Shown here piece after piece: positions 4,013 to 57,653 of a DNA stretch of 64,000 nucleotides. The stretch is from Bigelowiella natans CCMP2755 (Eukaryota > Protista > Cercozoa). Where the stretch lies: NCBI GenBank assembly GCA_000320545.1, contig ADNK01000503.1:1-64000 (forward strand), given 5' to 3'. The notes beneath the pieces are model-generated. The model was given only the letters and a program-made list of their open reading frames with translations, was not told the origin of the DNA and did no database searches. The translations under genes were made by a program, and so were the position numbers. The first letter of the stretch is position 1. Each line of letters opens with the position of its first letter.

Positions 4013-4369
4013 AATGTTCAGGACGACGTTTATGCTGTCCAATAGTTGAGGCACATGTGCGACCAACATTATGTTTTGGACAATATTCAATCAATCAATT
4101 TTGTGCTCGCAATATACTTCCTTCACGTACTGTAAACGAGACATCCAACTGCTGCAGATAGATGTGTGCCAACACAAGTGTACATACTGCAATACGTGCG
4201 AGCTATCGCTACTAGCTTGTTAGGGAGAGATATGACAATCTAGCAATACCTAGCCATATAGCCAGGGCGTGCATGCTAACATGAGCTGTTGTCTATACGC
4301 TGATCGCGCACCGCCACATGCCATGCCGAAGTAAAATAATTGTTGTTAGCATGCTAGCATGTACAGTAC

Positions 4370-4443
4370 GAGACGGATGTTCTGAAACTAATTAAAACTT
4401 TTCAATGCATGTACAGTATGTATGTATATTAGCAATGGTCTCC
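4370..4443 (-). repeat. Degenerate, interrupted copy of the spacer repeat
   Basis: GAGACGGATGTTCTGAAACTAATTAAAACTTTTCAATG ...insertion... CAATGGTCTCC. Confidence 0.6.
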
Positions 4444-4590
4444 GCAAGAATTACGGTGTCTATCATTAATTTACCAAAATAGTGCGAACGTGTAACTGCG
4501 CACACGCATGCAGTCAAGATCAATCTATAATAATTCAAAACAAATTGAATTATTTGAATCGTAACTTCGTCTCCGGCTTTGGATGAGTCA

Positions 4591-5948
4591 TTACTTCTTG
4601 AGGAAGTCTATCGCTCTAGCTAAATATTTATCGTATTCAGTAGCTTCGTCTCTGATCCTGTGGAAAATTTTTTCCATCAGTTGACAGCGATGTTGCAATT
4701 TTTTGTTAAAAAATATTACCTGTAATCTATGATGTGATGAATTAAATCCTGATCAAGTCCCCGATCAACAAGGAAATCCACAATGTTATCCATAGTCTCC
4801 TGGAATTGTGTCAGTGAAGATGTAGATTTTCATCCAAGAATATGTTTCACACCTCATTAAGCAATGATCGAGGAATCTCAACGTATCTATCTTCTTCCTC
4901 CTTTGCCGTTCCTTCGTTCGCGGGCGTAACAGCGATGCCAAATACATCAACATCTTGTTTCACTCCAAGACAATTGAACATCAAAGTCCTATACGGAACA
5001 AAATTAATGAAAAAGTGGACATATGAACTGTTACGTATTCACTCTTGTTTCCATGCGCAGAATGTGAAGACTCTAGTCTTTTATATCATAAGAAGATATA
5101 TTATTGCATTTTTGCTTATACATGTGAACACTACGTTGGATAATAGATGGTAAATGTAGCCATAAATGTGTTTCAATTCTAACTTTGGATGCCCTTCTTT
5201 TGTGATGGTAATGTCGAACTGAAACTCCTGATCTTCAATCATGCTGACATCCATATCTTCATCATCCTCTTCTACTTGTTCCACCTCTTGGCTGTATTTC
5301 AATTTTAGTTAAGATATGCAAGCAAATAGGCAGAAAATATAATTGTACTCCTGCTTCTGAGATTTCTCGAGCTCGTCTGGAGGTATCAAGCTATCCTAGA
5401 AGGAATTCAAACCAATATCACCAAAGATGGATGAAATGTAAATTATATGGCCCACTACCCATGGGCTGAAGTTTGTTCGAATAGTAACTATTTCTTTGTC
5501 AATTTGATCAACACGCCGAAGTATCAACTCATTGGTGCCATCAACCCGTGCTGCAAAACCACACGTGATTCAAATTTTACAGACACCACAGGCACAAGAA
5601 TTCCTGGACGAATCCACGGGTATTATTACATGTGAGAAAATCATTGCAGTAAGATGGAAGGTCAATGGGCGGAATTCGTTCTTTTTCCATGCTCCGTAGT
5701 TCTTCAAATTGGAACACCAGACGATCGACGCAACCCCCCTGATTGGATCATTTATCCGAAGACATTGATTGATGCCAAGTAATGGGTTGTTTCAACTGAG
5801 TGCTTACTTTTCTCTCTCCACCTCTGCTTTTTGATGTGAAAAACCGCAACACATTCAGATCTGAGAAACGAGGCATCGGCGCTGGCGCGCAAAGCCGCGT
5901 GGTCGCTCGCAGCAGTGGGCTTGGCCCACGCAGGGTGGTGGGTAACAT
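4591..5948 (-). CDS. Mitochondrial acidic glycoprotein, MAM33/p32 (C1QBP)-like
   Basis: Arg-rich, acid-poor presequence MLPTTLRGPSPLLRATTRLCAP. Acidic exons follow: EEDDEDMDVSMIEDQEFQFDITITKEG, TLMFNCLG, ETMDNIVDFLVDRGLDQDLIHHIIDY, EATEYDKYLARAIDFLKK*. This matches the MAM33 C-terminal pattern (FLxxRGID...E..EY..L..FL). Confidence 0.7.
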
Positions 5949-6657
5949 GTGCCACTCTATTTCTGGCGATTATTCACCGGATAGAAACCTAAAAAGTACT
6001 TAGCTCAATGTTCTCTATTTCAGGCAAATGTTCACCCTACAGAAACCTAATAAATGTTGGTCTGTTACTATTGTGATGTGTTATGTTGTAGGAGTGTTGG
6101 GCCACTATTCTTATTTCGGTCTATTTTATATTGATATAATATGCTGTGATATCTTGCTGTTTTCCGGTTTCGAATAAGCACATAATTCGGGTGAAAACAT
6201 TGTCGCATCTTTGTAAGGCATTCTACTTAATCTCTTTTTTGCTGTTTTTGTTTACGCTACGGAGTTATTTCGTTATTATTTCATTCCGGGCTTTATCATT
6301 ACCCGGGCTTAATTTTTACCCGAACAATATTCAGGTAAAAATTTTACCCCAAACTCAATCACAAGCCATTTTGGGTCATCTTCAAAAATTATGAACAAAT
6401 TTTTGTCAAAATGCCCTCCACGTTCTTCTCGACACACTCGGCCGGGCATAATTTAACCAGTGGAGACTATTAAGATCCGCTCATTGCGTATTTAGGCATT
6501 TTTAACCAGATGGAGGCAGGCTTCGGATTTGAGACATCGAGGATTCATTGTCGCTGCAGATAATTTCAATTGGCATCTCCACTGATAATTTTTGTTGCTC
6601 AGTTTATGAATTCGCATCGTGTTCACATTTCACGTCGAGTTCACGTTGGGCACAAGG

Positions 6658-7554
6658 ATGTATGCTGCGATCATGCTGCAATGCAATCTCAACCCTCCAC
6701 AATTGCTACTCTCAGAAGCTACAACTCACGGTCGTCTGGGGTCTCAGTTGCCTGCATTGGGCAGCAACCACCTGTATAGTTTTAGTGAAGGTGCTGGCTT
6801 AGCAGCGACCTGTTCGGGGGATTTTGGTTCTGTTGGAAGCAATTTTGATTCTCCTCGACAACATGCCACAGTCCCCCCGACAATTTTAGCTTGGAGTAGG
6901 TCTGGGAACACCATGGGCCGTTTGACTGACGTGCTGAACGACCCAGATTTCCGATTTTGCAGTCCAAATTTCCCACCGTCCTCCCTGAAAGTGGAAAAGA
7001 ATCAAAAGAAGCCTAGCCCATACAAGAATGGCGAAAATCATCGCAAGCATTACATGCTCTCTTCTGAATATCCCAAAAATTTGGCACAACCAGAACAGCG
7101 GGCGTCTCGTTCTTCATCGTCTACAGCGAATCAGGAGCAGGAATCAGGCGGCGTCAACCTCCCTGCAGCAGATGGCCAAGATACAGGAAAAAAGGAGTCA
7201 AAAGGGCTACAATCAGTCGTTCAAAATAATCATTCTACTCGAAATACTGTTATTCGTGGTGTGGAAAAAGATGAGAAAGATGATGCGATGGGAATGGATA
7301 ACAGAACATTGCCCGTTTTGGAGAGAAAAGTGAAGAGGAGAAAGAGGGCACGTGAGTCGTGTGGTCACTGTGTCCTGAAAAAAAGGAAATGTGAGGGTGG
7401 GTTTCCTTGCAAAAGGTGCAAAAAATACAATATTCCCCACCTTTGCAACAAGAAAGTCTTCGTCCCTCCATCGCACTGCACGTTGACACCAGGATGTACC
7501 AGAACAGATGGCTTTTCTCATGGAGGCCAGTGCAAGAGACAAAGAAGGCAATGA
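6658..7554 (+). CDS. Zn(II)2Cys6 (GAL4-type) binuclear-cluster transcription factor
   Basis: ORF 6619-7554, first ATG at 6658. Contains KRRKRARES-CGHCVLKKRKCEGGFPCKRCKKYNIPHLC (C-x2-C-x6-C-x5-C-x2-C-x8-C). Start codon uncertain. Confidence 0.8.
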   Translation: MYAAIMLQCNLNPPQLLLSEATTHGRLGSQLPALGSNHLYSFSEGAGLAATCSGDFGSVGSNFDSPRQHATVPPTILAWSRSGNTMGRLTDVLNDPDFRFCSPNFPPSSLKVEKNQKKPSPYKNGENHRKHYMLSSEYPKNLAQPEQRASRSSSSTANQEQESGGVNLPAADGQDTGKKESKGLQSVVQNNHSTRNTVIRGVEKDEKDDAMGMDNRTLPVLERKVKRRKRARESCGHCVLKKRKCEGGFPCKRCKKYNIPHLCNKKVFVPPSHCTLTPGCTRTDGFSHGGQCKRQRRQ

Positions 7555-8173
7555 GCTAATGATTGAATCAATGGACCCTGCACCATGCAAAACATGCACT
7601 ACACTATTGGTTGTCAAATGTTGACATCACCTAAACAAGGGTGGATATATTGAACTGAAACCAGTCGAAGATTTCTCATTGGGACAGTGACAAAAGCTGA
7701 ACATGATGCAGAACGTTCAGTGTGGCCGGAGCCGATGCACAGAAACTGTGCCTATAGGGCGTGTAAACGAATGTTGACGCCACATGGCATGCACTGGCAT
7801 ATGAATCTGTGGATCAAAAAAGAGAAATGGTAGAAAATGTGAAAAATGTGGATTGATTGAAAAGAGTAAATTAGAAGAGATGATATTTAAATTTTGTTAA
7901 GAAAGAGTCTACAACAGCTATTACTTGATTGTGATGGATGAGTTTGGCGCACCTGAAGCGCAATCACAACCGTAATGCATGGATCACTAGGTTACTCCTT
8001 GAGAGTCGACTCCTCCTTGCATGACAGCAATGCATGTGTCTGTCTGCGACATTCTGCGACATTGTGTTGTGTCGCTCTGTCTTTGCAGCTCGATTCGCAG
8101 CTATGCACAAGCTTTTTGGTTAGTCCATGCGTCTTTGATGTGCATGTTAGAGACACGTATACACTTTATGTAC

Positions 8174-8230
8174 ATGAGACGGATGTAATGAAATGTTTAA
8201 ATTTTTTCAATGGTCATCCTAATTTATGTA
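8174..8230 (-). repeat. Dispersed ~55-100 bp spacer repeat (GGATG...CATCCGTCTCA family)
   Basis: Reverse complement TACATAAATTAGGATGACCATTGAAAAAATTTAAACATTTCATTACATCCGTCTCAT is closely similar to 43513-43567. Confidence 0.8.
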
Positions 8231-8664
8231 TATACTTTGTCTCTTACGCACAGATTGTTGCACATGTGTGTCAGCACCCTTTGTGTATTACAACGGTTCA
8301 GTGACTGGCTGAAGCTGTATTGCGATCGGCACAGATTTGTTAGCATGCTAGCATGTGTGCATGCGAATTCACATCACATGATGAGACCATCATTCAATAT
8401 TGGTTTCATCCATTATTGCATGCATCGATCGGTGCGCACTACGATGCAGCCATTATCTTTTCGCCGCTTGTGCGAGTGGCACGTTGCTACAAACACAGGG
8501 CAACAACATTCACTCATGAGCATTCAATTGCGTGCGTGCAAGTATGGCTATTCTAATACCAGACTATATGCTAGACACTACACACAAGTACTTGTATGTG
8601 TGCTGCGTGCACATGCACATGCTGTGAAAAGTTATCTACCAGAGCAAAGTATATTGGCTATGTG

Positions 8665-10988
8665 TTACGACAAGGGCGTGGTGCATTGCAGTATTGTACC
8701 CTGCGGAATTCTGTTTCCATTCAAGAATATCTTTGCTTCCATTGGTTTCTTCCCCTGTTTCTGAACAATCAAAGGACGTAGGCAGTTTCCATCTCCACAC
8801 ACTATCGTTAGCTTGTCGTCGACCACTGTCCCAATCTCTACATCCTTAGCTGGGTCCCCAGCAACAACTTCCGCTCTTAACACCTAGAAGCGCCATTTCT
8901 TAGGAATACTGGAGATTCTCTTGATGAAGTAATTACGAATGAAATTTGAGGGAGTTACGAGAGAAATAACCTTAAACAATTCCCCATTTAGCTCAAAAAA
9001 GGCACAAGGCACCGGCGAAAGTCCGTGAACGAGATTGCGCAGCTCCTTAGCGCCCTTCCTGCTCGTATGAGAATGGAATTAAAATTTATAGAACCGGCCC
9101 TTTGACGACACAGGACTCTTGGACGAAAATCAAGGAAACGCGGGCTATGACATAAAATAACTATAGAACTTATCAGGATTGGCATACGCGAAGTCAAGCT
9201 TTCCATCTTGTTTATTGATCTTCGCCGCATGTGTTGCAGCGCTCTCAGGACTCTGAATCTCAGGAACCACGCTTTCGATACTGAGGGAAGTAATTTACTT
9301 TCTTAGATTGTGAAATTATATCCATAGCACGAGGGAATTTGAAAACAAAGTCAGAATTGCAACACAGAAGAGTTATAAAGTCAAAAATGAACTTAATACT
9401 TGTCGATGACTTCAAGGAGCATATCCGCTCTGTAAATTAAAGCTATTATCAGTCAATATATTTACACATGTGCATATTTTATGTAGAATATGCAAGATTG
9501 ATTGAGAGCTGTATCTTACCCAATTTCCTTCATGGTATCATGAAGTTCACCGCACGTGATGGTAGAATTTAGAGGGTAGACCTGTTGTTCAATTATTGCT
9601 TAAGTGCGAATAGCACAAATATTGTGGCACGTTCTTCACACAATCAATATCAGTAGCTAGCACAAACCTGCTTTTTCAATATAGGCCCAGTGTCCATACC
9701 CTCATCCAGTTGCATAATGCAAACACCTGCCCAAGCATGATAGCGATGGAGGAGTGAGGAATAAGTGAAACTTTGCCCGTTGGCTTATCACCAAAAGGGG
9801 TGACGGTAGACAAGGAAATTGTATTCAGGCACGAACCCGTTTCCTTATCACCGGCCATAATAGCGTGTGGGAGTGGTGCGGCGCCTCTCCAACGAGGTAG
9901 GAGAGAGGGATGAATGTTGAGGCACCCTAAGGAAGGGTTGATGCAAACATAATTATCACAAACGCTCATATAATATTAGAAGTACAAGTTTCAGATTATC
10001 CGTACCGTATTTAGTTGCTTCTAGAATTGGTTTCGGTAGAAGAAGACCATAGGCTGTGACCTGGTATGATGGTAGCATAATTCTTTCAAAATGGCTACGA
10101 CCTTACTTGCAGCGGGTGTAGATTCATATTCCTAGACCCAATGTCATAGATTTGTTCCTACCACAGCAAGATCCGCTGGGATTTCCTTAAATTCCTCCTG
10201 GTTTGCAGCCTTTCGGAGCGATTTCGGGGTGTATACTGGGATATCATGCTCCAAAGCAGTTCTGCCAAAAGAGATAATCTCACTTTTTGTTAAGCTGTGA
10301 TGACGGTAGTCCCTATGACTGTGTCTGTAACTTACTCGTGCACAGGAGATTTGCGAAGCTTACGCCCTCGTCCTGCCGGTCTTGGTGGCTGTGTGTACAC
10401 AGCTACTACCTATATATTTTAGATTAGAATGTTGAAAATTAGATTACATACAGCTACTATATATGTACAATGTTGTATTGTGCGACATGAATCTAACTAC
10501 TCGTAGATGGCACCACGTATTCTCATGATGTCAGTTACTCACTTCATGATTGGAATCAATTAGACGCTTGAGTGCAGGAACTGCGAACTCTGGAGTACCC
10601 ATGAAGATGACTTTGCGAGAAGGCGCGTTGGCGTTTTCGCTGTGCACGAAAGTAAACGCTCTAGAAAGTGAATTTCGCGAAGGGACGGCTGCGAGCTTCG
10701 TCAAGAAACGTGGTACCGAGCGAAGGCCCTAAAATTTCAGCGTTATCTCTGCATTAATCAACGGATTAACTGGGTAGTTGCTACCGTAAATGCTCGGAGA
10801 CTAGGAAAGCCTGTGGACAGTCGCATAGTTGCTGGGTTGGATTGAGGAGTGCTGAGTAGACTCCTTCCAAGCGTCAGGGTTCCAAGCAGAAGTGTTGCCA
10901 GTATTGCAGCTGCGTTCAATCTCACACGGTCCAGGCGGGGTCGTCGACGTTGAGGATGGGCCAATATTGGACCTGGGCAGGACGCCAT
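8665..10988 (-). CDS. fmt: Methionyl-tRNA formyltransferase, organelle-targeted
   Basis: Exons [88 protein letters not shown], and C-terminal [17 protein letters not shown]. Long N-terminal targeting extension. Confidence 0.93.
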
Positions 10989-11740
10989 AAGGGTGGGGTA
11001 CTGCTTGACCTGACGACGTGTGGCTGTCTGGCTGTGGTTTTCATTGAGAGTAGTTTTCAGCACCAGACTCTTTTCGTACGATGTTTCAGGGTAAGCAGGT
11101 ATTTTCCAGGATTTCACCCTGGTTTTCGTCTAACGACATGTCTGATGATGAGAATCATGGTCATATTCTGAGAAGGTGGGTACGTCCATGCTCTAAACAC
11201 TTGTTCTTTCCGTGAGTCACATTATTTTTGGGTGAAACTACCTAAGATATAGAGTGGAGGGTACTTGCGACATCGATGCTCTCTGACTGCGAAGAAGAGC
11301 ATCGGTGGGAAACACGTGTCATTTTTATTATATCTACAGTACAAAAGACCAATTTGAGAGAAATTCGCGCAATGGTTCGGAACAGAAGAAGGAGATGGAA
11401 GAAAGTCTGCTCTCCTCGCACCTCCCTCCCGTTCAAAACTGAACAATCTAATGAGCCTTGGCCTCACCAACCATAAAAGAAAAATCATGAAAGGAAACAA
11501 AGACAACGAGACGAAACCGAAGGTGCCATGTTGTATTGAAACGAGTAGAAACCACGAAACTACAAAACTACAATACAAAACTACAAAACCACAAAACCAC
11601 GTCGTGTACGGCAGACTTTACCCTTGTTCCTCACAAAGAGAGCTTGTGAGAGGCGGTGAGGTAGATTCACGCTGGGATATTTGATAGCTAGTATTAGGTC
11701 GGGAAAATGCCATTCTTTTCACACATGCTAACCCATACAG

Positions 11741-13120
11741 AAGGCAAAGACCGGGAAGTTCGGCAAGTTTCTTGCTGCGAACACTGTGCTGGACCTCCTC
11801 AAGGAACGAAAGGAAACGAAGGAGATTATCACACTCCAGCATAATGTTACTGTGGAACGAGCTCTCAAGACCCTGAACCAAAACAAGATTACCAGCGCCC
11901 CAGTGGTCCTTGCCGCCTCTGTTCTTGACAACGACGCAAACGATTTCATGGGTATTATTGATGCTGGAGAAATATTGAGAAAGCTTTGTCGGGGTAATTC
12001 ATCTAAACAAGCTGAAATTTACAAAACAAAAGATTTAAGTTGTATTGGTTCATAGAAACTAGACTCTTGGAGGAGATTCAAAAGATTCAAGAACAAAAAC
12101 TCAATGTCGATGAAAAGATCGAGGACTGCGAAAGGGCATTTGAGACTTCTTGCAGGGAGTTTTGGCAACGGAAGCTTATCCAAGTGTGTGGACAGGATGT
12201 GACCTTACTTCCTACTGTTTTCGCGGACACAGACCTAAAAGTAGAGATTATAACCGTTTCTTAATGTGAAGTTGCTCATAGGATTTTACCTTTCTTTCAG
12301 ACTCTAATTTCACAAATGCTATTCGACAAATCTGGAAACCCCATCCATCGTGTAGCTCTTCTTAACCAAGCCGAAGTACAAGCGCTTGTCACTCAATCTG
12401 ATGTGCTAAAGTTCCTTCATCAACACAAAAGCGAAATAGGAGGAATCCTGAAGGAGAAAATCGAAGATCTAGGTATTTGTACTCCTCCCAAGGATAAGCG
12501 CACATAGTTGAGACATATAATTTACTTAAGGACTATACAATCCGAAGAAAGGAGTAGTAACAGTAACGAGTGATACCATCGCTATGGAGGCATTCCATGA
12601 AATGTTTCAGAAGAATCTCAGCTGCCTAGGTATTATCTTGTTGCTTTGCGATTGATATACGTAACCAACATCATAAATGTGATTTAAGGAATTGTAGACG
12701 AAAATGGTACCATGCTCGGCAATCTCAGTGTCTCAGATTTGAGGGTAGATTCCACGTTTTTTAATAAAATATACACTACGAAAGAAATCAAAAAACATAT
12801 TTTTCTAGCTGTAGATTTTTCATTACTTTTTTATGAAATCCTTGTAGGGACTTACTGTGGATAGATTTTCCTCTTTATCACATTGCGTGACCGAGTTTCT
12901 GAAGATTTCCAAAGCACTCTCGCGATCGTTCGCAACCGTTCTCAATGCACAGCTCAACGATCTTCGAACACTCGCTGTGAATCCAGGATCCACGTTTGAG
13001 GAACTTCTTGACCTCATAACCAAAAATCGAGTGCATCGAGCGTATGTTGTGGACGAAAATTGTAAGCCCCTCGGGGTGATTACTTTGTCAGATGTTTTAT
13101 TAATGCTGTTAAAAGCTTAG
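11741..13120 (+). CDS. Four-CBS-domain protein (AMPK-gamma/SNF4/SDS23-like); first exon not located
   Basis: Exons TVERALKTLNQNKITSAPVV...FMGIIDAGEIL, IHRVALLNQ...LVTQSDVLKFL, IVDENGTMLGNLSVSDLR, RVHRAYVVDENCKPLGVITLSDVL. All are typical CBS repeats. Confidence 0.85.
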
Positions 13121-14176
13121 ATCACATTCTTCATATTGCTAGTCAACACTGAAAATACCATCCGAAGATCCCATCTTGACATTGATCGACATGTGTTGAA
13201 GTTGTGCATGTATCTCTTTTTAGACCTTGCAGATGTGCACGTATTATGCTTAGAATGTCCAGTTAATCAAAGAAGACGATGCCGTGGACCATTTCGACGG
13301 CATTGACGAACATGCGCTGCGTCCATATTCACAATTTAGCAATGCGGCATTTATGTTATCGTAATGCTAATTTTTATTGAGTTGTGCACTGTTGTGGCAT
13401 CTATGTATGTTGTGGCTCGGCGTGAAGCCTAAAGACGACACATTGGGCCCATCTAGCCATGCATGGCTGGCTAGCTAGATGGCAGCGCACGCGCTACAGA
13501 CGAACATCTGTGTCTCTAGGCCTAGCTAGCTAGCAGAGCTGTGCACGTGCGTGCGTTTTGCGTGTACCAAAACTAGAATTACCTCCGGGACATCATGTTT
13601 CACGTCGTAGGCTCCAAGACGAGTTGGTGTTCTCTTTTGGAAAGTAAGCTAAAGAGTCTAGAGAGTACTGCTAGACTGCCCCATATAACGAGTCTGTCGT
13701 CGCTTTACTCAATCTAGCAATGTGCATTTTCATACTATTCGCCGCTATTTATTGAGATCATTACCATTCACCTTCTCCCAAATTTATTAAGTTATCAATC
13801 ATACGCGCTGTAGATTCCTCCCTGAAGAATTAACAAATTACTCTAGCATGAGACCCGTCATAAATTCAGAGTGCGATCTTAACGTCTAACCTCATCTCGT
13901 CTTCACTACGCTCAGAGCGGCGTCTGGTTGCCAACTTAAAGAACCTAGTAGGTTTAGCAGTAAGTTTAGCTCGCTCTCAATTATAAATCGAATAAGATTA
14001 ACTTCAAATATCATCTCTTCAGTTTTGCCCTACTCACCTTGTATATTGCTTTGTCAGGATACACAACAATTGCTCCTGTCATACAAAGTAAATAAATAAA
14101 TAAATATATATATATATATGGTAAAGTTTTTTTATCTCATTAGAATTTTCTGGTTAAAGGTGACGACGACTAAATT

Positions 14177-17100
14177 TTAAGGCAGCCCTCCCCTCCCCCC
14201 CGGAGATGATTGTGGTGTCACAAAGACTGGTGTTCTTTCACTAGTTGTCATCTCAAAGGTGTGCAGGCGATGGAGCTTACCTGAGGCCTCCGCAACAAGG
14301 TGTGAGACATCGGAACAACCTGCAATAAGGTTTAGAATCGTTCACCGTACTTTAGAAGGAAACATTCCTGATATTTCATGCAATGTGCTGATATACTACT
14401 ACTACTACTACTTCTACTACTACTACTACTGCCACATCAAATATCCCTACCTTTACTCCTAAGATATCAGCAGCTCGTAAAGAATAACGATGGTCACTTC
14501 TACTGCTGCTGTTGTTCTTGTTGCTGCTGTTGTTATTCTGGTCGGAGTTACTCCCATCACCATTTGCAGGCTTCTCTTTCACCTCCTCCGCTTCATATAC
14601 GGCCAGGTACTCGAGCCCACTGGTAACGCTTTCGAACGGGTTTTGGTATAGTTTGACTGAAGGAGAGACGACAACAACTATGAGAGGATCACGTACTACT
14701 ACTCGCCCATGTAATAATGTCAATAATCGTATGCAGCACCATCACCAGCAATTACCTTTGCCACTTCCACCGCCACCACAATCAGTACTACTACTGCTAC
14801 TATTGCCACTACGTCAGATAATAATATACTATCAATCAACACCAATTTCTGAGAATCCAGCCAAGCATACGTGGCCCGTATCTGCGGACACCATAAATGC
14901 CTGAAGAATAGGAACCCATGCACAAAGATGATGGTGAGGAGCTCAAGAAGCAAACACGACTATACGCGATGAAGAAGCTGATGAAAACAAAAGGCTCAAG
15001 TGCCACCATCACTATCATCATCATCATCATTTTACCTTACAGTCATTCGTATCCGCTATAACCGCCATTCCTCCATAAGTAGCAACGTGCTTCAGAGCTA
15101 CACCCTATTCCACGACAACTATTAGATTTTTCTGCCAAGTAAAACGAAGCATCGAAATGCATGGGAATACTGCGAGTAAAGTATCACCTTGGATGTGACT
15201 GAGATTTGGTACATATTGATAGAATTGTCCCACTCCATACCGAGTACGCCGCTGTTTGTGTATGTTTGTGTATGTTTGTGTCTGTGTGTGTGTGCGTGCT
15301 CGCGCCCATTCGATATGTAATACAAACAGGAAAAGGATGGTCGTTATAACCAAGCTATTACACCCTGACACAAAACATGAAATTGAGGATGGATACTAAC
15401 AAAATGACGACGACGACGACGATGATGATGCTGGCAAAGTAATAGCTAGATGTAATGCACGTACAATCCTGCTAATAAGGTTAAGTCCGGATCCATTGTC
15501 CCCACGCATCGTCCTTTCCAAATTTTGAAACGAATATTAAGTATCTACCATTCGAGGTGAGGTTTCATAATAAAAGCATGAAGTTCAACTGCATGCACCC
15601 GCTAATATAAAAAAACAACAGCAGAAGGAAAGCTATAATAGTTTTTGGATTTACTCGTGAGTGACCTGTCATTGCAAACTCATACTGGTAGGTCGTCCTT
15701 CCATCCACATTGAACAGCTGAAAAATAGAGATTTACAGGAGGAAGAAGAACTGGAACAACTACTAGGCTATTTCCCGTATAATTCGTCAAAAGATGGCAT
15801 CGTCGCTGCTCAGCAGCGCAACTCTGTGTGTGTGCGTGTTTGCTATGTGGTTGTTATTACACTGAGAAAAGTTTCCTTCTCCTGCTCGTTGCTATGAGGA
15901 TATCGGAAGGCCTGTTGTTAGGAGGGTAAATAGAAACACATGCCACTGCTTAATGAGGAGAGCGGGACAACGAATGTAAAACCGTGCTTCACAAACAAAA
16001 CAATGGTCACTAGGTACATGTTCCATATGAGGGCTCTCCAAGCGATCTGAGTCAGACGAGTAGGGAAAGTTGGCGACTATAATAAGCTGCAGCATGCTGG
16101 ATGGCGCGATAGGAACCCCATCCACGGCGAGAAAGGCTATGTGCTATTCGTAGTTTTGATGAAGAAGAAAACAACAGTCTTAAGTTAAAGGGTTTTTTAG
16201 AAGGCATCATATGAATGAAAACTGGATGAGAATGTGAAGGGAAGGAACTCATATAATCGACGGTCTTGGCTTAGATTGGAACTTCATTTGAAAATTACAT
16301 ACTACACATACCGCTATAGTACCCGTTCTATGCAATGTAAAAGAAGAGAGAGGTGGATGTATTTTGGATATAACGATAAATCGGATAGTCACAACACAAC
16401 GGCTGTGTTGTGGTTGTCGTTGTTGTTGTTGACCTGCGGCCCTGGAGTAGCCTCCGAGTCAAAATGGCTCGAGAACAATCTTTCAACGTTTTCGATTTCA
16501 TATGATATCCTCGTCTCATGGTTACTTTCCTTCTCTTCTTCATCGTCCTCGCCCCCCCCCGCTACTGTTTCGCTATGATGGTCGTCATCGCTGGGGCGGG
16601 TGAGAGTAACTAAAGTAATAACAGATTTGCGGAGGCATTTCGGCCGTTTGGTATACAGAGGAGACCCGACTGACATATGAAGTATCAATGTGAGGGGAAG
16701 GAGAGAGAAACCACTTCGATCAGATATATCAATTCATGCTTGGTAATATGTGATGATACTGCAATTTGAGACATATCAACACCACACAGGGATAGCTTGT
16801 TGCGAGCCAAGCACTCCATTATGGCAGCAGTAGTAGTACCTTGGTTGACCTGTGTGGTGTATGGGAGCTGTGCAGTCGCTGCTGCTGCTGCTGCTGCTGC
16901 ACCTTGTTCTTTTTCTAGGTGGAGATGATCATCGGCTGAGTGGTTACTAGATACTTGATTTCGTTCATGCACTTTTTGTCCGTCATACTCTACTTCATCC
17001 AAGTCATCACCGCCTACGTGTACATTGCTATCTTCTACAGGAGGATCGATGTCGGACGAGCAACGCTGCTGTGTCTTAGCTCGTTTATCATAGTTGGAAG

Positions 17101-41425: not shown

Positions 41426-41470
<45 letters not shown>

Positions 41471-43612: not shown

Positions 43613-43690
43613 CAATAGTTCCACACATCTACATTCATGTGCATATATCACATGTAATCTATCGTCGAATAGGGTGCCATCCGGTTGTTT

Positions 43691-44460: not shown

Positions 44461-44501
<41 letters not shown>

Positions 44502-44991: not shown

Positions 44992-45029
<38 letters not shown>

Positions 45030-45404: not shown

Positions 45405-45446
<42 letters not shown>

Positions 45447-46107
45447 CCATAGAGTAGTTTCGGTTGCAGATACTACAGGCGTACACTCCTCGCCTCCTAC
45501 CAAGCATATGTGACGACGGTTATGATAGAGAGATAGTCGGTGATTGACGGAAAAGGAGATAAGAAGATAATAATATCATTAAAGACGTCTGATCTAGTCT
45601 CTAATGAATAGAGCAGCACGTTACTTTCACTACCACTACTGCTTCTTACTACTGCTACTCCTACAACTAGGTCTTCTCTAGTTGATTCGATTATATTAGT
45701 GGTGTGTTTCGGTGGTGGTTTTGTAACTTTTTCTCAAAGATATTGAGATGACGACTGAGGTGATGCCGACGGGCGAATTTGACTCCGCATTTGTCACATT
45801 TGTAGACCTGGAAGAAGAAGAAGAAGAAGAAGAAGAGGAAGAGGAAGAAGAAGGGGGAGGGGGGAGAAACATGCAATCTTATGAACAGCACACCGCTCAG
45901 CACCATCTTTTATAAATATGAATTGTTCATGGTGGGATGAGTTAAAATAGCACTGAGCGTACAAGAAGCTCAAAATCTAGACACGCATGAAGGTAGATAT
46001 ACGCACACTAGTAGAATGTGTGCCGAGGTGCTTTTCTAGCTGTGTTGCCTGTCCGAAAAACTGATAATAATACACACAAGTTGAACGGAGAATCAGACGG
46101 GCATTTC

Positions 46108-46165
<58 letters not shown>

Positions 46166-46750
46166 GCGTCTAAAAGAAAAATTGAAAAGAAGAAGAGAAG
46201 TGAAGGAAAGAAGAGAGAGAAGAACGGGGTAGTAAGCTAAAGTAGTAACACTAAGATCGATCATCACCGAGATTAAACACGTGTAATAATACCACCTTAT
46301 TGCACTTCGGGCATGGAAAGATTCGTAGCTGATAATGCCGCACTCGCAGGTGCGTTTGCATGTTGGACTTCTGAAAGCATAACAACACGAAGAAGAACAC
46401 GCTTAGAGACGTTTTAAATCCCATCGTCTTCGTCCTCATCATGAGCAATATTGGGTATGGTGTGCTTCTAATATGCGGTGGATTGTAAGATAGATATCGA
46501 TCTCGCACTCGTTACCAGCCAAAAGGCAAACAGCAAAAAGCAGACCGCATGGAAACACCAGTATGCTTTATCATGATACTAACACGATATATTATCATCC
46601 TCCTCCTCCTCATCATCAATGTACCAAACCTGGAAGAAAGTTTTTCCACAGAGAGTACAATTGTATGGTGGGAGGCCTTTGTGCTTGTGGACATGAGCGA
46701 CCATGGAAACCTTCAGTTGTGGATCATGAGCGCCAATATACCATATATAC

Positions 46751-46782
<32 letters not shown>

Positions 46783-47411
46783 CTAATATATATATTACGA
46801 CATATATTATTAACACTCGCCGATAGAAGGGATAGGCATCGAAAGATCATCATCAGCATCATTAACCTCATAAAAATTACTACGGACTGCTAGCACATCA
46901 TCTTCATCATCATCATCTACACATCGAAGACAATAACCTTGTGGTGAAAGCTGAGGCCACATATATGGCACTGAAATGGCTTGTATCTAATTGATTCACG
47001 GGCAGAATATCGATCAGAGAACACAACTGACGAGTCGCAATAAAGCAGGTGTATGGTGCTTGGAGGGGGGACGGGTGAAAGTCAGTGAACCAAAAATTGA
47101 GAGCAAAAAAACAAGAACAATCGCCTTTCGATAGGAGACATGTGCGAAGTTTTATTTCCGGTTCCACCTCTCATCCAATGTAGACTCAAATATATAAAAA
47201 TCATGTTTTGATTCAATATCTTGCAGTAGTCACATGTCTAACATTGGTCAACTACCCGTCATGCCGCCGTTTGTGTGTACGCAAATGCCCATTTTGGGTG
47301 AAATTGCGATTGCACACCTTGCATCTGGAAGAGGAGGTGGAGAAGGAGGAGGAAAATCAAAAGTCAATCGAATGCATCACAATGGTGTGTGTTTAATATC
47401 TACATTAAATT

Positions 47412-47458
<47 letters not shown>

Positions 47459-48780
47459 TTCTTCCCCTCACTCTGTTGTTTCACAGACAGACCTACCTGA
47501 AAGGTTTTATGCCCTGGTGAATTCGCATGTGGGCATTCTGACATACAGTCAATATCCATCCATGAATACATCATCACTTTCATACTTCACTCAAAGCAAA
47601 TTTGAGGAAACTGAGTGAAACGGTTGTCAATAGCACAGGGTACTACATTAGATATTTACCAAGTTGTCTATCTGATGAAACGACTTGTTGCAGAGTCGGC
47701 ACACATGTGGCCTATCAGCTGCATGAGTTCGGATGTGTCTGAAGTATAATTGTTTTCAATGCGGTCAATGGAAGACAACAGCAGAAGTTAATACAAGGAG
47801 TGAAGGTTTCAGTTATTCTTGTTAATTATTATCGAAACATCTACTGCAATGTCTTCTTCTGGGCTGTCGCAGATGTTTATGCGAAGGTACCTCCACATTC
47901 CTAAAATAGCGAACTTGGGATCGAAACTCTGGCAGTGCGAAAAATAACAAAACACTTAGGTTAGAGATGATATCCTCGCATCACGTATCTGGATCGTGCA
48001 TGCCACCGCTTCACCCTATCAACGCTCACTAAGTCTTTTTGTATCTCTTATCTGACCCTGTTGCAAATTGTGCACGTGTTATTCCTATCAAGAGAAAGGC
48101 TGTAGATCTCCCTCAAGTGCTGCTCCAAGTTTTGACTGGTATATGCTATGCGCCTTCCAGTTTGATTGTTGCTGCTTTGGCCATCTTCATTGCCCTCAGA
48201 ATCTACCAGCTGCCGTTGCAGAGGGGACATCGAAGTCATCTTAGCAGAGATTTCTATCTGACCACGTGAGACGGATGGAGGCTGGCGGTTAGCCTTCCCC
48301 AAGGCGATCTTGCGGCCGTTACGTGCACTTCTCAACCAAGGAGTAGTCGTCATCATATCGTAACCAGTACTGCGTGTGATCAAAAGTAACAGGATGCTGC
48401 TGGCAACAACTACCCGTCGCAGCCATCTTGTCTGCTATAAAGGAAGTGGGCATTATGTCTAGGATAAGCATGTTGTTATTTCATAAAGATAATGTTGGAA
48501 TCCATGACAATAATATCGAATGCTTGCTACTACCTCTGCTGGTCGTTGGCGATTATCTTCTTCGCGCTGATCCTGGTAGTTGGATCCCATCAATGTATAC
48601 TTTCAAATATAACCAAAGCCTCGAGTCCAATGGATCCCATAGTTATTTGCATCTCTGACTGCAAATTATCTCGTTGTCTCACTCACCTGTTTGAAACACG
48701 AATGGATTGAGACGTAGATATACGACCTTCTCCACAGGGGCGTCGCTTGAGACATGGTTGTCACCCATGGACAAACACAT
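43691..48780 (-). CDS. Multi-finger C2H2 zinc-finger protein
   Basis: Spliced fingers: RCKVCNRNFTQNGHLRTHKRRH, YKPFQCHICGLSFHHK/VSMVAHVHKH, PYNCTLCGKTFFQ/KSNMQTHLRVRH, FPCPKCNK/FFGQATQLEKHLGTH, YKCDKCGVKFARRH, LQNHMRRH..FFCP/CNRTFVLKMHYYRH. Termini approximate. Confidence 0.82.
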
Positions 48781-49207
48781 AAGCCAAATCGAAATACCGT
48801 TCGAGTTTGCGATCAATATTCGCACTATTCCGATCATATAGGAAATCTAAGTGTGGATACAAAAGAAAGTGCACCTGCCACATGTCAGCGCGTGGACCGC
48901 CATTCCGGCGAGAGCCGTTGTCGTCGTTCTGGGTTTCAGTTCTCGCGTTTAGCCTTGTCGCAGATACTGAATTTGAATGCCTTTACGAAAAACGGCAAAC
49001 GAACAACAATTGGTTGTCGTATTAACCCAAATGGACGTTATTTCCTTAAGATTATACCCCCAAAAAAGTACATAATGGCAGATTTGCTTCAAAACCCGAT
49101 GACGACGATGATGATGATGATGATGAGGATGGCGAGGACGGAACCTTAGACGAAGTAAGGAGAGAAGTATTTAGAACGATTTTAAACTTTGGAACGCAGC
49201 TCTACAG

Positions 49208-50981
49208 ATGAGGGAAGTTGTTACTATTTGTATTGGCCAAGCTGGCGGACAGGTTCGTGTGACTGCGTGTGTGGTAAACAGCTTTCAATGGCACATCCCC
49301 ACTTACTACTACTCTTTGTAGGTAGGGAAATCTTTCTGGGAGCTAGCTTGTCTCGAACATGGTGTTCAAAATGATGGAACACTGTTGGACGAAAAGTGTG
49401 CGGGTAGTATCGGGACATTGTATTCTGAGAGCAAGGAGGAGACTTGGGAGCCCCGGACCCTGTTTGTTGACCTTGACCCTGAGCCAATCGAAGCACTTCA
49501 AAAGTCAGCAGCCTCAATTCTAAATCCAGCCTCTCTCATCTCTGGGAAGAAGAGTGCAGGACACATTTTCTCAAGAGGCAGGTCTGAGAGTGTAAGGAAG
49601 GAGGTTCTCAACGTTGCACTTGACAGGATCAGGGCTCTGGTTGACCAATGCGAATGCCTGCAGGTTACCTAAGAGATAGCATGTTGTAAGTAATGATAAG
49701 TAATGAATGACAGAAATACTTCCAACCTTCTTTGTACGATCCATTGATGAAATCATTTGCACAGTCTTTCATAATTCTCAATTCGCTGGGAGGCGGGACA
49801 GGATCAGGTTTCGGATCCTTGTTGCTAGAAAGTCTGTCCAAAAATTATCGTAAACCAAAGACCGGGTTTCATATCTTTCCATCATGTGCTGAAAGCAGCA
49901 GCAACTTCTGCTCATCATCTCCCGAATTCTCCTCCTCCACTCTGGAATCGTACAACGCAATGTTGCACGCACATACCCTAACGGATCACACAGACACGTC
50001 AGTAGTCCTGGGCAATACTGCAATCTATGATATTTGTCGCAGTTCACTTGGTGTTACCCGGCCCGGTTATGGCAACTTTAATGAAATTATCGGCCAATTA
50101 ATTTCTGCCAGCACCCTTGGATCACGTTTCGATTCAGCCCTCTCTGTACAATCCTCCTATTTCCTCACTGCAGATGTGAGTCAGTAACGAACGATTATTG
50201 GTGGTTAGGTGGATATATCCGAGACCCAAACTGGCTTAGTACCCTATCCACGACTACACTTCTATCTTACTTCCTTTGCTCCAATCACCACAGATGTTGC
50301 ACTGCCTAAAGCAAAATTAAATGCTAAGGTTCTTAAATAAACCGTCAAAACAAAACCCTGAAATAATTTTGGTCAATCATTTCCATTCATCATGAAATTT
50401 AGGTCGGCGAATCAATATGTGATATTCCAACAAGAGTTTGCCAACTCGTCTCCGATTACGCTTTATATGAGGAGCCATCTGTACTCGATATTACAAAGGC
50501 AGCTTTTGAGGCAGGAGCGTCGCTGGTTAAATGTGATCCCAAGAATGGAATGTACATGTCGTGCTTCCTCATGTATCGTGGGGAAGTATCATCGAAAGAC
50601 GTAAATGAAGCTATCAAGCTGCAAAAAGTACGGGATGACATAAAGTTTGTTGACTGGTGCCCAACTGGCATGAAATGCGGGATAGCAGGCACACCAATGG
50701 TCGTAACATCTGATGGTACCATGGTGAAGACAAAGAAATCCGTCATGTCGTTAGTGAGTAGCACCGCTGTAAGGCACGTCTTTAGACGTCTTGCAGAGAT
50801 GTTCGATGTGATATTTAAGAAAAAGGCTTTCCTTCATTCATATTTGGCTGGCGATATTATGGAGGAAAATGAATTTATCGAGGCTCGAGAAAATATCGAA
50901 GATTTGATCCGCGATTACGAGGATTGCGAGCTAGATGATGATGCAGATGAAGATGAGGGAGGATTCTCTGATGATGGGTGA
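49208..50981 (+). CDS. Divergent alpha-tubulin paralogue
   Basis: [86 protein letters not shown], acidic tail. At least four introns. Confidence 0.92.
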
Positions 50982-52129
50982 CATCGCAATTTGATGTCTA
51001 CTTTAGGAGTGTCAATTATAAAAATTTCCCAGGCTACGCTGCATAGATCATCAAATCAACAAAAGTGTATTACCTGCAAAATTCTTGAAGGTTGTTTTCA
51101 TAGAATTAGGTTGCCTCATAGCATACCACTGGAAATGAGTGCAGAATGATTACTAATAACATATGCACACGTACATGCTGTCACGCGATACATAGCCGTA
51201 CGATACGTGCACATATGCATTTGTGCTAGCTAGCTAGTACAGACAGAGCAGTCACGACATCACTACGCACACACACATGCAAAGTATGAAGTCACAGCTC
51301 ACTGCGCATGTCTCTATATGATGTAGCTATCTAGCTATATAGCTACGCGTGTCGACGACTTCGTCTATACGTCGCGCATGATCTGGCATGTGATGATGTA
51401 TCGTATTCTATATCATAGCTACTACATCGTAGTATCGTACGCACACCGCGCTAGCGCGGCGACCGTCTGCACATCTAGACATGCGACATAGCACAGCTGA
51501 ACAGGACTATGCGCAACGTAACAGCCACATTCAATATGTATATCATTACACAGCTAGAGAGCTAGACAGTCTAGCAGTGACGCTCTCGTTAGCTCGCTTG
51601 CGTCAATATCTCTAGATCTAGCTATTACGCATGCTAGAACATATAACATTAGCTTTTATATATAGTTCAGACGATGCATGTCTACAAAGTCTACGTGATA
51701 AAGCGATCTCTGCGCATCGCATGCGGCGCGCGCGTCTCTAGGTCTGCTAGTCTAACCAGCAGGTTTGACACGTTAGCAATGTGTCAATGCTAGAATGGGT
51801 CAATTCGAGAATTGTAGCTATATATTATCCCCTATACATGACTTTTATAGCTAGCATGCACATATATGGGTTGGAGCGCACACACACAGTCATATGGCTG
51901 CCAGGTATTATATCAGCCAAACTTGTCTGGTGAGATCAGAAAATGCATGCTAGAGGATTTATTAATAGGATCTCCTCAAGCCTAGCTGTCTGTCTGAGAA
52001 TAACGTCCTTCCTATCTCTAGTTTTACAGCATACTTTACGCCTTGGTACTCGAATCAAGAGTAAGCGATAAACTCTATGACGACGATAATACATTGATTA
52101 TTCATGATGACGCCTGCAATTCGACCCCT

Positions 52130-53799
52130 TTAGTCCATAATCTTCTGTTGGATATATACTGTGGCTTGTCCCCTGACAAATATAGCAATATGAACTACCG
52201 AACTTAGAGTGGTAACCTATTAACAGTACTAACCAGCTCATATTGTGCCTTTCGCTCTCTAAGACCTTCCAAGCTGTGGAGGGGAGTTCTTTTGTAAATG
52301 TGATGAAGAATGAGCCTTTCTTCATTTTTTGAGCAGCCTGTGCTAACTGTATGGAATAACGAACACATAGAAATCATCAACATATAAAAATTGATTGCGT
52401 TACATTAAGTACCTGTTGCATCAATTTAGAATCAAAACATGTAGAGTTTGCAAAGCAGAGGTCTGCGTCTGAAAAATCGTAGGCAATTGCGTCTCCGCAG
52501 ATAAACTTAATATCTGTTTTCTGCTTTGCTTCAGATAGTTGAGGGCGAATGGCCTGAAAATCAACAGTCATGCAGATATCACTACCTACACACTACCAGG
52601 AATCAAGAAAAGATAAGCACAGTTGTGAGTGTCTTTCTCGTCCTACCTTGTTCCATCTCTCCAATAAAGAGACAGAGATTTTGTGGAGACCTTAGAGGTG
52701 ACGAGGGAAGATTTCAATTTTGATGCTGCTGATGCTTCTCAAAATAAACCATCCAGAATATTTAAATTTATTCATGCTGACAATACTCCTAATGCTCTCA
52801 TTTACCCTCGAGAATCTCGACTCCGTAAGCTTTGTCGAAATCATGGAGGAGCGCAGCTGCAAAAGTAGGTTTTCCAGTTCCTTCATGAAAAAAAGGGGAG
52901 ATTAATAAATTGCGGGAAATTCCGGGTAATGAAGTGGACTGGGTTATGTTCAGACCTGATCCAATGTCATAGTAGATTCCACCAGGTTGTTGAAGTCCTC
53001 CGTACCACTTCTTTATCTTCTCTATGGTCACTGCATAGGGGTCGAATCGTATTTCCCCATATACTAACGTTGATGCACTCATTTCCTTTTCGTCACGTTC
53101 CTTCGAAGAAGCCTTTTTACCCATAGACACTGTGATACAATGCACACAAATATGACAAAAGAGTCTTATTATGCGACAGTTCGCTGCATTTTTACTGTAA
53201 TGCAGCCTTGTGAGAAATAGCTCTTTCGAAGTTTAGTTACATTTATGGAATACCTGGAGTCTCCAACACAAGCTCATCCCAAATCTTCATCTGTGTCGCA
53301 ACTGTTACATCATTTGTCTCACAAAAGAGTATTCATTTCGTGCAGGGGAAAAAGAGTTCTTACTGTATTTTTGGTCTAAAGGCTTGCGACCCTCCAGTTT
53401 TACATTCATCATCTTTACTTCTAGGTCCTTCACAACACTGCGAAATATCCCATTTTTTATCACAAGATCAAAAACAACTTTGAAAGCACAAGAAACCTCA
53501 TGGTTTTGTAGCAGATGAGCCTCTTGAAGGATTTCTGATATGTAGACCGTGACTAGGTATTTACAATTTTAAATAGGAACCAGACTCCGACCGCACAGTC
53601 TTCTATGTGTAGATAGGGGTCGCTGGATGGGGAGAGCGGTGCCGCGATGTTTCCTTCCCTGAGGGCTGTTGTCTCCTTTTGCTTTGCTTGTTTTATGGTG
53701 TGAGAGGATTACTTTTTTGGAAAGTTTTACAAAGTAGTCCTTTGTTTGCGATCTACGACAATGGATCTTTGAAGTCGTATCATCTTGAATAGCCGCCAT
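52130..53799 (-). CDS. DOT1-like class I SAM methyltransferase
   Basis: STLVYGEI, YYDIGSG/TGKPTFAAALL..AYGVEILE, FICGD...LCFANSTCFD, MKKGSFFITFTK, MSW/GQATVYIQQK*. Confidence 0.8.
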
Positions 53800-54117: not shown

Positions 54118-54300
54118 GTGCTGGATCGAGACCCTCCTCACGGAGTTTGTGCGTGGCCGATAGAAGATAGGCTCGACATGTTCGAAGCGCAGATTACCGG
54201 ACCACAAGATAGCCCCTATGCAAAAGGAACGTTCAAGCTGAGACTTGAGGTTCCAGATCGATATCCATTCGAGCGGCCAAAGCTAAAATCCGTCACTCCA
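54118..54300 (+). pseudogene. Truncated E2 ubiquitin-conjugating enzyme fragment (UBE2T-like), continuing as an unrelated ORF to 54813
   Basis: DPPHGVCAWP...FEAQITGPQDSPYAKGTFKLRLEVPDRYPFERPKLKSVTP, then homology is lost exactly before the HPN motif and catalytic Cys. No in-frame ATG between the stop at 54028 and the fragment. Confidence 0.7.
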
Positions 54301-57147
54301 GCTGAACGGCAGGTGAGAGGGGCACCAACGTTCCTTACAGCTTCCTTTCTCCTCTTCTTCACCAGAATTTGGGAGAATACTTCTACTGGTCGGTATGTAC
54401 CAGCAAAACTCCCACGTTTCGAGTTCGGTAAAAGCTACCTTGGTTTCCAGAAGTGGACGACAACTTGCAGCAATCGAGAGACCCTGACAAACTCACGAAG
54501 ATCCATGCGAAATCCCATTCTGGAAACCCATTCTCTGGACAGAAAATTAGATAGGAATTACTATAGGTTGGGAAAGTATCGAAAGGCCAGTGAGGGAATG
54601 CAAGGTGGGGGTGAGACGCCTCATCTTCCTTTTGACGGCAACAGTGGTCCTAACGGAACTATCTCCGGCGGAAATAGTGAGGTTAACGGTGGAAATGAAG
54701 AAGTAAATGATATGGAAGCGCAATCCGAAAAACGTTTTGAAGAAATGAAGGAGCTCCTGGGTGCGAGGTTCGTCGAATACTTCGAAAAGGTTAAACTTTT
54801 TGCAAACGTTTAATAAAATGCCGGCTGAGTTGTACCACGTACTTAGGAGTACGGAAAGCATAGAACAGTCTCAATACTGGACGCAATGTCCAAGGTATCA
54901 CATTTTTGACAGTACGAAGTATCACAGCTAATCCTCAATGTTTGCAGAATGTACAACACGTCGCTTTGATTAATACTTTTCATTCTGAAAGTGCTCCAAA
55001 TATCCCGTCCTACAAGTAAGACTTATTAGCGCTAATGAAAGGGAAAGGGAGAAAGGGGAGAGTAAGGAATGAGGAAGTGAGACTGAGATCACGAGGGGAA
55101 TCATGAAGGCTAAAACGGCACATTTATGAATGATCCTTTGTATTCACAGTGTCACAGTCAATCTCTGCCAAAGTTCGCCAATTACTGTATACTCGCGCAA
55201 TACTACAAAATATGGTGGTGCTATTTATTGTGATATTGTGATATGAAAGTTGGGTGGTTGATAGATTATATTACAGAAAGCGAGTCGAGGTATCATGCTC
55301 CACCAGAAGAGGATCTTGATACGGGATTGCTCCCGTAAGCTCATTATTACGACAATTTCCCCACACCGACCGATACTGTATGGGTAGGTACTACTGGCTC
55401 GATAAAGCATCGTTGATGCCACCACTTACGCTCGCACCACAAAATGGTACATCGAGAAAATGAAACTTGTGGATGATAATAATCATAATACTGATTCCGT
55501 AACCACTACATGTAGCACATCGAGTGCTGGACATGTGTTCTGCACCTGGAGGTAAAACAGTAAATGCGCCTGCTGTGTTGTGTTGCATTAAGATTGGTGC
55601 CGCAGGTAAATCTCTAGTCTTATCGCTGCTTCTCTTTAACTCTACTGACGACGCTAAGGATTCAAACGCCATTCAACTTGTAGGAACATATCATGGTGTA
55701 TAGCTCATTTCTGACGCAAAGAACTTTTGATAGATATGCAATGAGAAATCGCAGCCCCGCCAAGCACGGTTGAACAGGGTCCTTTGGAAATATCTGCCAG
55801 AGCACATCATCACTCGCGTGCGTGTAACTGGCAGGGATGCAACGCGCTGGTCTGAACTTTCTACTAGTGTACCAAGTTCATGCAATGGATAAGATGAATT
55901 AATGTGTTTTGAAGGCACGAGACCAGTGTCTACGACCGTATCCTAGTGGATGTACCGTGTTCATCCGAAAGGTAAGAGTCCTTTTCATCCAGCACCATAC
56001 AATTTCGCATTGTTTCAAACGTAATGTGATACAATAAAGGCATCTTGTACATGAAGCTCTTAAGAGCAACTCAAACATCGATCCCAAGCAATGGTCTCCG
56101 TCGAGGTTATACTCTATCTTTACAGGGAATATTCAATTCGCTCTTAAGTTCAAGTGTAATGTTTAAAAGGTGCAAGAGGTATGCATCAATTCAAGTAGCT
56201 TTACTTCGCTCAGCTATAATGGCAGCGAAGACTGGGGCCCTGATTGTCTACAGGTAGCTTCTATCATTGCAATGATAGGGCTATCTCAGATGACCTTGCT
56301 TTGAATATGTTGCAGCACCTGCAGTATAGCTTCTGTGGAAAACGAAAAAGTATCTTATCATTTTACAATCGCTTAAGATCGAACCTAAAGGACTTGATGC
56401 AGGTGATTCGCCGAGTACTGAAGAAGGTCGGGTCACAAATTAAGGTAAAACAAAATCAGGCTTTAATGATTTCTAGCAGGTTTGATGATTTCTCATAGAG
56501 CAGCGTAACGTTTTTAATTCAAAGGTCGAAAAGGTGAGCGGATTTGTGAGTGAAGAACAGCTTAAAACTATGAAAGCGGAATATAGAGATCCAGGGTTGA
56601 AACCTTACTATTGCAACAATTACTCATTCAGCAAAATAAGGAAAGAAACGAAGTGCAATTTAAAAGGAATAGCATATAAAAGTGAAGCAATTATGAAAAA
56701 GCAGAAATAAAAAATTATGAAAATAATGATTTTTGGCACATCTACAATTAAAAGGTGGATTTTATTGCCTGACCGGGCTAAATGTGGACCTATTTACTGG
56801 GTAAAGGATTCATGACGACAAATTCGTCAATATCTACGACTTAACTACTACGTTGTGTGTGTTATTCTTAGCTTTTTCTAAGAATGTATGGTTACAAATA
56901 ATTAATTCATATTATCAGGTGGCCCTGCGAAAATGTTGATTGCTTGCAGTAGTACACATAAGTTTAACTAATCCTGAGGGAAATCACAGTAGAAATGGCT
57001 TATCTCAATGCCTTCGACAGCGAAGCGATATGTGTGAGTGTAATCTAGATATGCGTGACTGGGGTGGACGATGGGATATAAAGTCATGACAATTTTTTTA
57101 AGAAGGGATAAAATACCTGATACAAATCTAGCATGTACATCTTTCAC

Positions 57148-57199
57148 TACCATTCTAGCATTGAACAAATTTAATTTAATTCATACATCCGTCTTACAT
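57148..57199 (+). repeat. Partial spacer repeat
   Basis: CATT[CTAGCATT]GAACAAATTTAATTTAATTCATACATCCGTCTTACAT. Confidence 0.65.
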
Positions 57200-57653
57200 T
57201 TTTCACTACACATCTATACATGTGCAGCACGCACCGACATATAGCGAAAACCGCTAGACCGACCGCGTAGCAAGTAGCGCCACCGTATTATTATATAGTT
57301 ATCGTCGTGGGCGTGCAGACACATGCATGTACGCATCGCGAGCTTCACGCACACATTTATTACGCCTATGTACACCTATGCAAGCCTACAAGGAAATGTA
57401 TGGGTCCTTAATAGCTACATGCTAGCATGCTAATGAGTTAGGTGTCGCCCGCGTGCCGAAATGCATCAACCCAGCGTTGTGGTCACTGTTTTTGCGCTCA
57501 AAATGGTTACGAAACATGAACAAGCTAGTTCTGTAGGCAAATGTTTTTTAACCAAGTGAATGTCGTAAACTAGTAAAGTCAGTATAAATCACACTGAATT
57601 CGGGCAATTAAACATATTCAACGTATTGTTAAAGGAATATGTATTGAATCTCC

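Follow-up and report, generated by a model that had tools for sequence, protein, structure and literature searches.

The window analysed here, 64,000 nucleotides of contig ADNK01000503.1 (positions 1 to 64,000) in the Bigelowiella natans CCMP2755 assembly GCA_000320545.1, contains seven islands of intergenic DNA in which one small sequence change recurs: an 8-bp insertion consisting of CTAG and a copy of the adjoining 4 bp, which leaves an exact N4-CTAG-N4 site, here called a scar. A regular-expression count identified exact sites at 31 of the 159 CTAGs in the window, and all 31 lie within the islands, which total 7,052 bp. The remaining 56,948 bp contain none, despite 78 CTAGs and 781 matches to CWWG (the core of the target sequence described below); thus, target density alone fails to explain the location of the scars. 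An earlier note on this DNA, made from the sequence alone, had listed most of these positions and had noticed none in promoters, exons or introns. Both statements hold: every listed position is an exact site, including the double CCTG scar at 26561/26569, and three more were found, at 57566 (TAAA) and, with CTAG also serving as the duplicated 4-mer, at 13522 and 51226. The CTAG scar class of B. natans is real and genome-wide.

Island A (4150-4700) has scars at 4236 (CAAT) and 4350 (CATG). Island B (7950-8900) has one scar at 8344 (CATG), along with a minus-strand copy of the 3' tail of a long interspersed nuclear element (LINE) at 8162-8231, and is flanked by a plus-strand gene on the left (Zn_clus open reading frame, 6619-7554) and a minus-strand gene on the right (Formyl_trans_N, 9679-9975). 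Island C (12450-14260) follows a plus-strand gene on its left (CBS domain, 11732-12052) and has scars at 13449 (CCAT), 13522 (CTAG, giving a triple CTAG), 13667 (ACTG) and 13710 (CAAT). Island D (26200-26950), between a plus-strand exon chain (21498-26154) and a minus-strand gene (GH20, 27306-28325), has scars at 26251 (ATCA), 26311 (CGAT), 26415 (AGAT), 26561 and 26569 (CCTG, in tandem), 26583 (CATG), 26634 (CTAT, within a LINE tail) and 26771 (CATG). Island E (42400-43870) has scars at 42920 (CTTG), 43161 (CTCA), and 43401 and 43439 (both ACAT), together with an unscarred LINE tail at 43500-43580; its orientation is weakly indicated by plus-strand open reading frames on the left and mostly minus-strand ones on the right. 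Island F (50990-51935) has scars at 51226 (CTAG), 51327 (CTAT), 51447 (CGCG), 51471 (ACAT), 51567 (CAGT), 51608 (ATCT), 51734 (GTCT) and 51786 (AATG). Island G (57030-57600), with a minus-strand gene on its right (eIF5 W2 domain, 57829-58104), has scars at 57151 (CATT, within a LINE tail), 57250 (ACCG), 57418 (CATG) and 57566 (TAAA).

The earlier note had placed all scars in spacers between convergent gene 3' ends. Flank orientation was taken from Pfam matches, RNA contigs and one exon chain, with open reading frames searched singly and no joining of exons. All eight flanks that could be oriented present their 3' ends to an island (both sides of B, D and F, the left of C and the right of G). 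The confinement to islands stands in full, and the tail-to-tail arrangement stands for these flanks; island A, the right side of C, both sides of E and the left side of G were not oriented. A home-made exon-chain gene finder missed too much when introns were heavily penalized and, with a low penalty, made chains that span 21 kb; it was retained only for the plus-strand chain to the left of island D. Codon scoring of single frames was dropped as too noisy.

The last RNA contig of the left, plus-strand gene of island F ends near 51004, and its right gene is on the minus strand, with eight introns that read CT..AC on the plus strand and contigs that start at 51930-51971. No RNA contigs were found inside the island. 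A short-read DNA run of 2025 reproduces island F together with its scars, differing by one single-nucleotide polymorphism (SNP; 51376), which shows that the scars are no assembly artefact. No scar polymorphism was seen at this island, where the comparison consists of that one DNA run with its single SNP and of environmental RNA contigs that stop short of the island.

The excess of scars over chance is large. Dinucleotide-preserving shuffles of the islands gave a mean of 0.11 sites (maximum 1), and permutation of the right flanks among CTAG sites gave a mean of 1.36 (maximum 7 in 2000 permutations), so that the comparison with shuffled controls suggested in the earlier note comes, for the window, to 31 observed against 0.1-1.4 expected. 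When all 256 possible 4-mer cores in the window were compared, only CTAG and dinucleotide microsatellites showed an excess, with the flank duplicated at 19.5% of CTAGs versus about 1% of ordinary cores; leaving dinucleotide microsatellites aside, the restriction to CTAG was repeated in genome samples of 99.5 kb and 185 kb. The length of the duplication is fixed at 4 bp: a 4-nt register yields the 31 sites, but 3-nt and 5-nt registers yield only two each. Iterative removal of scars revealed almost no hidden deeper nesting. The scars as builders of the islands were considered and ruled out, because they contribute only 248 bp to about 7 kb.

Alignment of 115 scar events yields a two-fold symmetric target consensus, S|CWWG|S, as the earlier note had expected for a dimeric transposase or integrase. 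Position 1 is C in a fraction of 0.58 and A in 0.27, position 4 is correspondingly G in 0.58 and T in 0.27, the two positions between them have about 70% A/T, and G or C is favoured immediately outside. The simpler rule (A/C)NN(G/T) given in the earlier note fits 27 of the 31 scars in the window and 87 of 116 in the 185-kb sample, against a background of 23%. Most of the duplicated 4-mers in that sample are not palindromes (84 of 116), which argues against hairpin or quasi-palindrome models. Since CTAG itself fits the consensus, every scar adds fresh targets, and runs of (CTAG)3 are explained; recurrent events at the same spots are indeed seen as nested (CTAG)3 and tandem scars.

The repeat copies found in the islands come from the 3' end of a LINE of the APE type: they share a constant tail that forms a hairpin, are truncated to varying extents on the 5' side, and have target duplications about 11 bp long (loci L017 and L025). 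The tail is highly conserved and of high copy number, with at least 1125 candidate matches in the genome, and thus supplies reference copies in which an insertion is recognizable. Besides loci elsewhere (L006-L034), five copies lie in the window, of which two carry the 8-bp insert (26610-26681 and 57120-57200) and three do not (8162-8231, minus strand; 26454-26518, plus strand, which serves as an empty-site reference for the two scarred copies; and 43500-43580). The insertions that the earlier note had recognized at 26632 and 57151 against homologous repeat copies both hold in these comparisons. A gapped pattern search of the genome retrieved 102 enlarged LINE-tail copies, eight with an exact scar at differing positions, one of the eight bearing a triple CTAG; copies that lack the 8 bp far outnumber scarred ones. 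At locus L024, a double scar stands where the family consensus has CATG. This locus, and the comparison of copies that have the insert with those that lack it, identify the 8 bp as a derived insertion, contrary to the possibility, raised in the earlier note, that CTAG is ancestral and only the flank slipped. Scars also occur, some of them nested, in two of three environmental (metagenome) contigs that contain the LINE tail, and are therefore not peculiar to the assembly of the cultured strain. The enlarged tails show other small insertions too, for example TA-rich inserts and tandem copies of the final 10-11 bases, so that the CTAG scar is one of several indel types there. One environmental contig (L035:190-5112) includes an open frame of 1158 amino acids with endonuclease and reverse-transcriptase domains, preceded by a frame of 483 amino acids.

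Scans of the 91.4-Mb assembly indicate that scars are abundant throughout the genome. The CATG-flanked CTAG 12-mer is present in 3,828 copies versus 7 for its reversed control, and CTAG flanked by ACAT or ATGT in 1,733 (868 + 865) versus 10 (8 + 2). When the core was relaxed to ACAT-CNNG-ACAT, 2,226 matches were found, of which 78% (1,733) have CTAG, and the other 15 cores are jointly near the control level; when the outer core bases were relaxed instead (NTAN), the additional matches were mostly microsatellite-like strings, which shows that the outer C and G, too, are specific. Of the non-CTAG cores at ACAT-flanked sites, CTGG and CCAG occur most often, several-fold above the others, with 12 among the first 100 CNNG matches where about two would be expected; they are probably scars in which transitions have altered the central TpA. 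Extrapolated from the share of these flanking 4-mers in the sample and from the sampled scar density, the total of exact scars is roughly 30,000-50,000. The 185-kb sample contains 116 exact scars, and these (counted as 115) far exceed the excess of sites that match at three of four flank bases (about 30), which places mean scar age on the order of 3% divergence. This age is similar to that of the young LINE copies that trap scars, and the process either was recent or continues at a low rate.

DNA is repeatedly opened with a 4-nt stagger at the palindromic target S|CWWG|S, and the four target bases are duplicated around CTAG; this has happened tens of thousands of times, is restricted to untranscribed islands behind gene 3' ends, and is recent enough that most scars remain intact. 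The best-fitting explanation, unproven and in our estimation evenly balanced between acceptance and doubt, is the one proposed in the earlier note, that the scars are excision footprints of a cut-and-paste mobile element. An element with ends CT(A)...(T)AG would insert in islands and later leave, and the flanks might be rejoined by either of two routes: by TA pairing of short element-derived overhangs, as in the Tc1/mariner superfamily, or by joining of cohesive ends that arise from cuts within palindromic CTAG termini, with a geometry like that of piggyBac. The former route is the one put forward in the earlier note, in which CTA overhangs anneal through TA, and is reasonable as a proposal. 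The latter would better account for the uniformity of the scars. The copied 4-mer and CTAG would be good new targets, so that scarred islands would attract further events, and an element of low copy number that hops frequently, or one that is not resident, could leave many scars without visible copies. The excision proposal is partly supported, by the derived nature of the insert, the 4-bp stagger, the symmetric target and the recurrence of events. Targets other than CWWG show no plain 4-bp duplications, so that each event necessarily includes CTAG.

Several results weigh against excision. Strong regional targeting is needed to keep scars out of the introns, exons and other spacers that make up the remaining 57 kb. 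No minor footprint variants were seen, which is unusual for end-joining repair. In the 185 kb that hold 116 scars, there was neither a filled site, with an element between duplicated 4-mers, nor an inverted-repeat element with 4-bp duplications, and the only 8- to 12-mers that recur next to CTAG derive from an internal CTAG of the LINE. The Pfam screen of the genome matched no DDE_3 (Tc1-type) domain; it also gave no match to Transposase_1 (mariner), a result that is uninformative because the control likewise matched nothing. CTAG inserts are absent from the 21 indels of a mutation-accumulation study, in which fewer than one event would be expected and which therefore has no power.

Other searches for the agent were made. 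Inverted-repeat scans for CT or CTAG ends with a 4-bp duplication returned low-complexity matches only. Non-scar CTAGs that pair up through identical outer 4-mers were considered and rejected: biased flanks explain their slight excess over off-register controls, and the pairs have no sequence in common. The piggyBac domain (PF13843) had no genome match, which is uninformative for the same reason as the mariner result. Two DDE_1 (pogo-type) domains are in open frames of 600 and 543 amino acids (G000:C2661:202080-202535 and C2845:6046-6501), and of fifteen Harbinger-type frames one has its domain (C777:78413-78880, DDE_Tnp_4) in an open frame of 527 amino acids; the pogo-type and open Harbinger-type frames are possibly intact or domesticated transposases. 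The genome has 38 rve frames. An rve domain occurs in an open 1489-amino-acid frame at no fewer than 15 places with identical scores (for example, C3730:48434-48721 and C2162:32936-33223), apparently a young retroelement family, and stand-alone rve frames of 373-379 amino acids occur at eight further places. None of the Harbinger-type, pogo-type and rve frames could be linked to the scars. Sola, Kolobok, Academ and several other families have no Pfam model (PMC5751038), and Sola-like families could therefore not be revealed by these screens.

Full-text literature searches returned no account of CTAG scars, whether in Bigelowiella or in any other organism, in agreement with the earlier note, which had not recognized a described footprint class. 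Excision of Tc1/mariner elements such as Sleeping Beauty leaves the target duplication flanking a few element bases, with one dominant footprint that arises from short 3' overhangs. The scars are similar in that the duplication is retained on both sides of a few bases and one footprint prevails, but Tc1/mariner elements duplicate TA rather than 4 bp of variable sequence, leave footprints that vary, and remain resident in many copies alongside them. The piggyBac transposase targets TTAA and excises without a scar, and the related PiggyMac excises internal eliminated sequences of Paramecium at tens of thousands of sites. B. natans resembles these systems in the 4-nt stagger, the TA-centred palindromic tetranucleotide, the cohesive ends that would give uniform junctions and, as in Paramecium, the tens of thousands of sites; it differs in having a CWWG-like target with CTAG left behind instead of TTAA and seamless repair. 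When TTAA is taken as the core, flanks are duplicated no more often than the background (3 of 620). PIF/Harbinger elements make a 3-bp TWA duplication, unlike the scars, for which the 3-nt register yields the two sites given above. Sola, Ginger, Chapaev and Kolobok elements, in the Repbase classification, share with the scars a target-site duplication of 4 bp; we know of no footprint class or CT...AG termini for any of them.

An unlikely and nonetheless serious rival is that a host-encoded enzyme, such as a domesticated transposase or integrase guided by chromatin, writes CTAG into staggered breaks at sites never occupied by an element. This would account for the lack of any element among 116 scars in 185 kb, for the extreme uniformity of the scars and for their strict confinement to islands. 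However, we know of no enzyme that would extend filled-in ends by a fixed tetranucleotide; the analysis yielded no candidate gene, and insertion followed by excision predicts all features equally well. The target zone of such an enzyme could be defined by the H3K9me3/H3K27me3 heterochromatin state that is found on transposable elements in B. natans (10.1101/2025.03.17.643675). In a rather unlikely form of the same idea, the scars would belong to a self-reinforcing process, of a type so far undescribed, that marks the genome or disables elements: a host enzyme would place a fixed palindrome, in which either strand contains a stop codon, in the silent DNA behind genes and duplicate 4 bp in doing so. 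An improbable alternative is a hit-and-run episome or virus-like element, not resident in the sequenced culture, whose integration with a 4-bp stagger is followed by excision; it would explain scars without copies. The B. natans genome does hold integrated giant-virus and virophage DNA (10.64898/2026.01.13.699255), and stand-alone integrase frames of about 373 amino acids are present. These integrases are without any link to CTAG ends, however, and we know of no integrated virophage that excises.

Two further explanations are far less probable. Breaks of the topoisomerase II (Top2) type, with a 4-nt stagger, made between convergent genes, filled in and rejoined, would fit the stagger, the symmetric preference and the location, and trapped Top2 produces 2- to 4-bp duplications in yeast. 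The scars share with such short duplications the 4-nt stagger and the link to convergent transcription, but Top2 duplications have no inserted tetranucleotide; N4N4 duplications without an insert are no more frequent for MNNK (0.81%) than for other 4-mers (0.87%), and the Top2 model, which offers no source for CTAG, is close to refuted. It is similarly most unlikely that scars arise by ultra-short target-primed reverse transcription by the resident LINE, or by slippage with selection of a palindromic motif. The APE-type LINE does populate the same islands, and slippage of 8 bp could have produced a small number of arrays, the CCTG tandem at 26561 among them. Against this, LINE duplications are about 11 bp long and the tail does not end in CTAG, the length of the insert never varies, the duplicated 4-mers are mostly non-palindromic, most scars consist of 1.5 units rather than arrays, and peeling away the scars exposes almost no deeper nesting.

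If the scars are excision footprints, B. natans retains a record of roughly 30,000-50,000 cycles of insertion and excision by an element that has left almost no copies, a transposon lifestyle seldom visible in genomes, with very strict targeting to the spacers of convergent gene pairs. Should there be no element, the scars are the product of a new DNA transaction that writes sequence. Either way, the scar is a marker with which to date events, find the enzyme and define a chromatin compartment in a little-studied eukaryotic supergroup.

The islands have other compositional features. GCATGC, GCTAGC, CATG and TGCA are 2- to 20-fold denser inside than outside, an excess far beyond what the scars contribute. 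TpA depletion was not seen in the islands of the window (rho 0.95 inside versus 0.77 outside); the published TpA mutator of B. natans is a process separate from the scars. Scans of the window for tRNA genes and Rfam families gave no matches. Marine metatranscriptome contigs match both neighbour genes of island F (50401-51004 and 51930-53706) with 90-99% identity, share SNPs, and have the same eight short introns spliced out, which indicates that a close relative is expressed in the sea.

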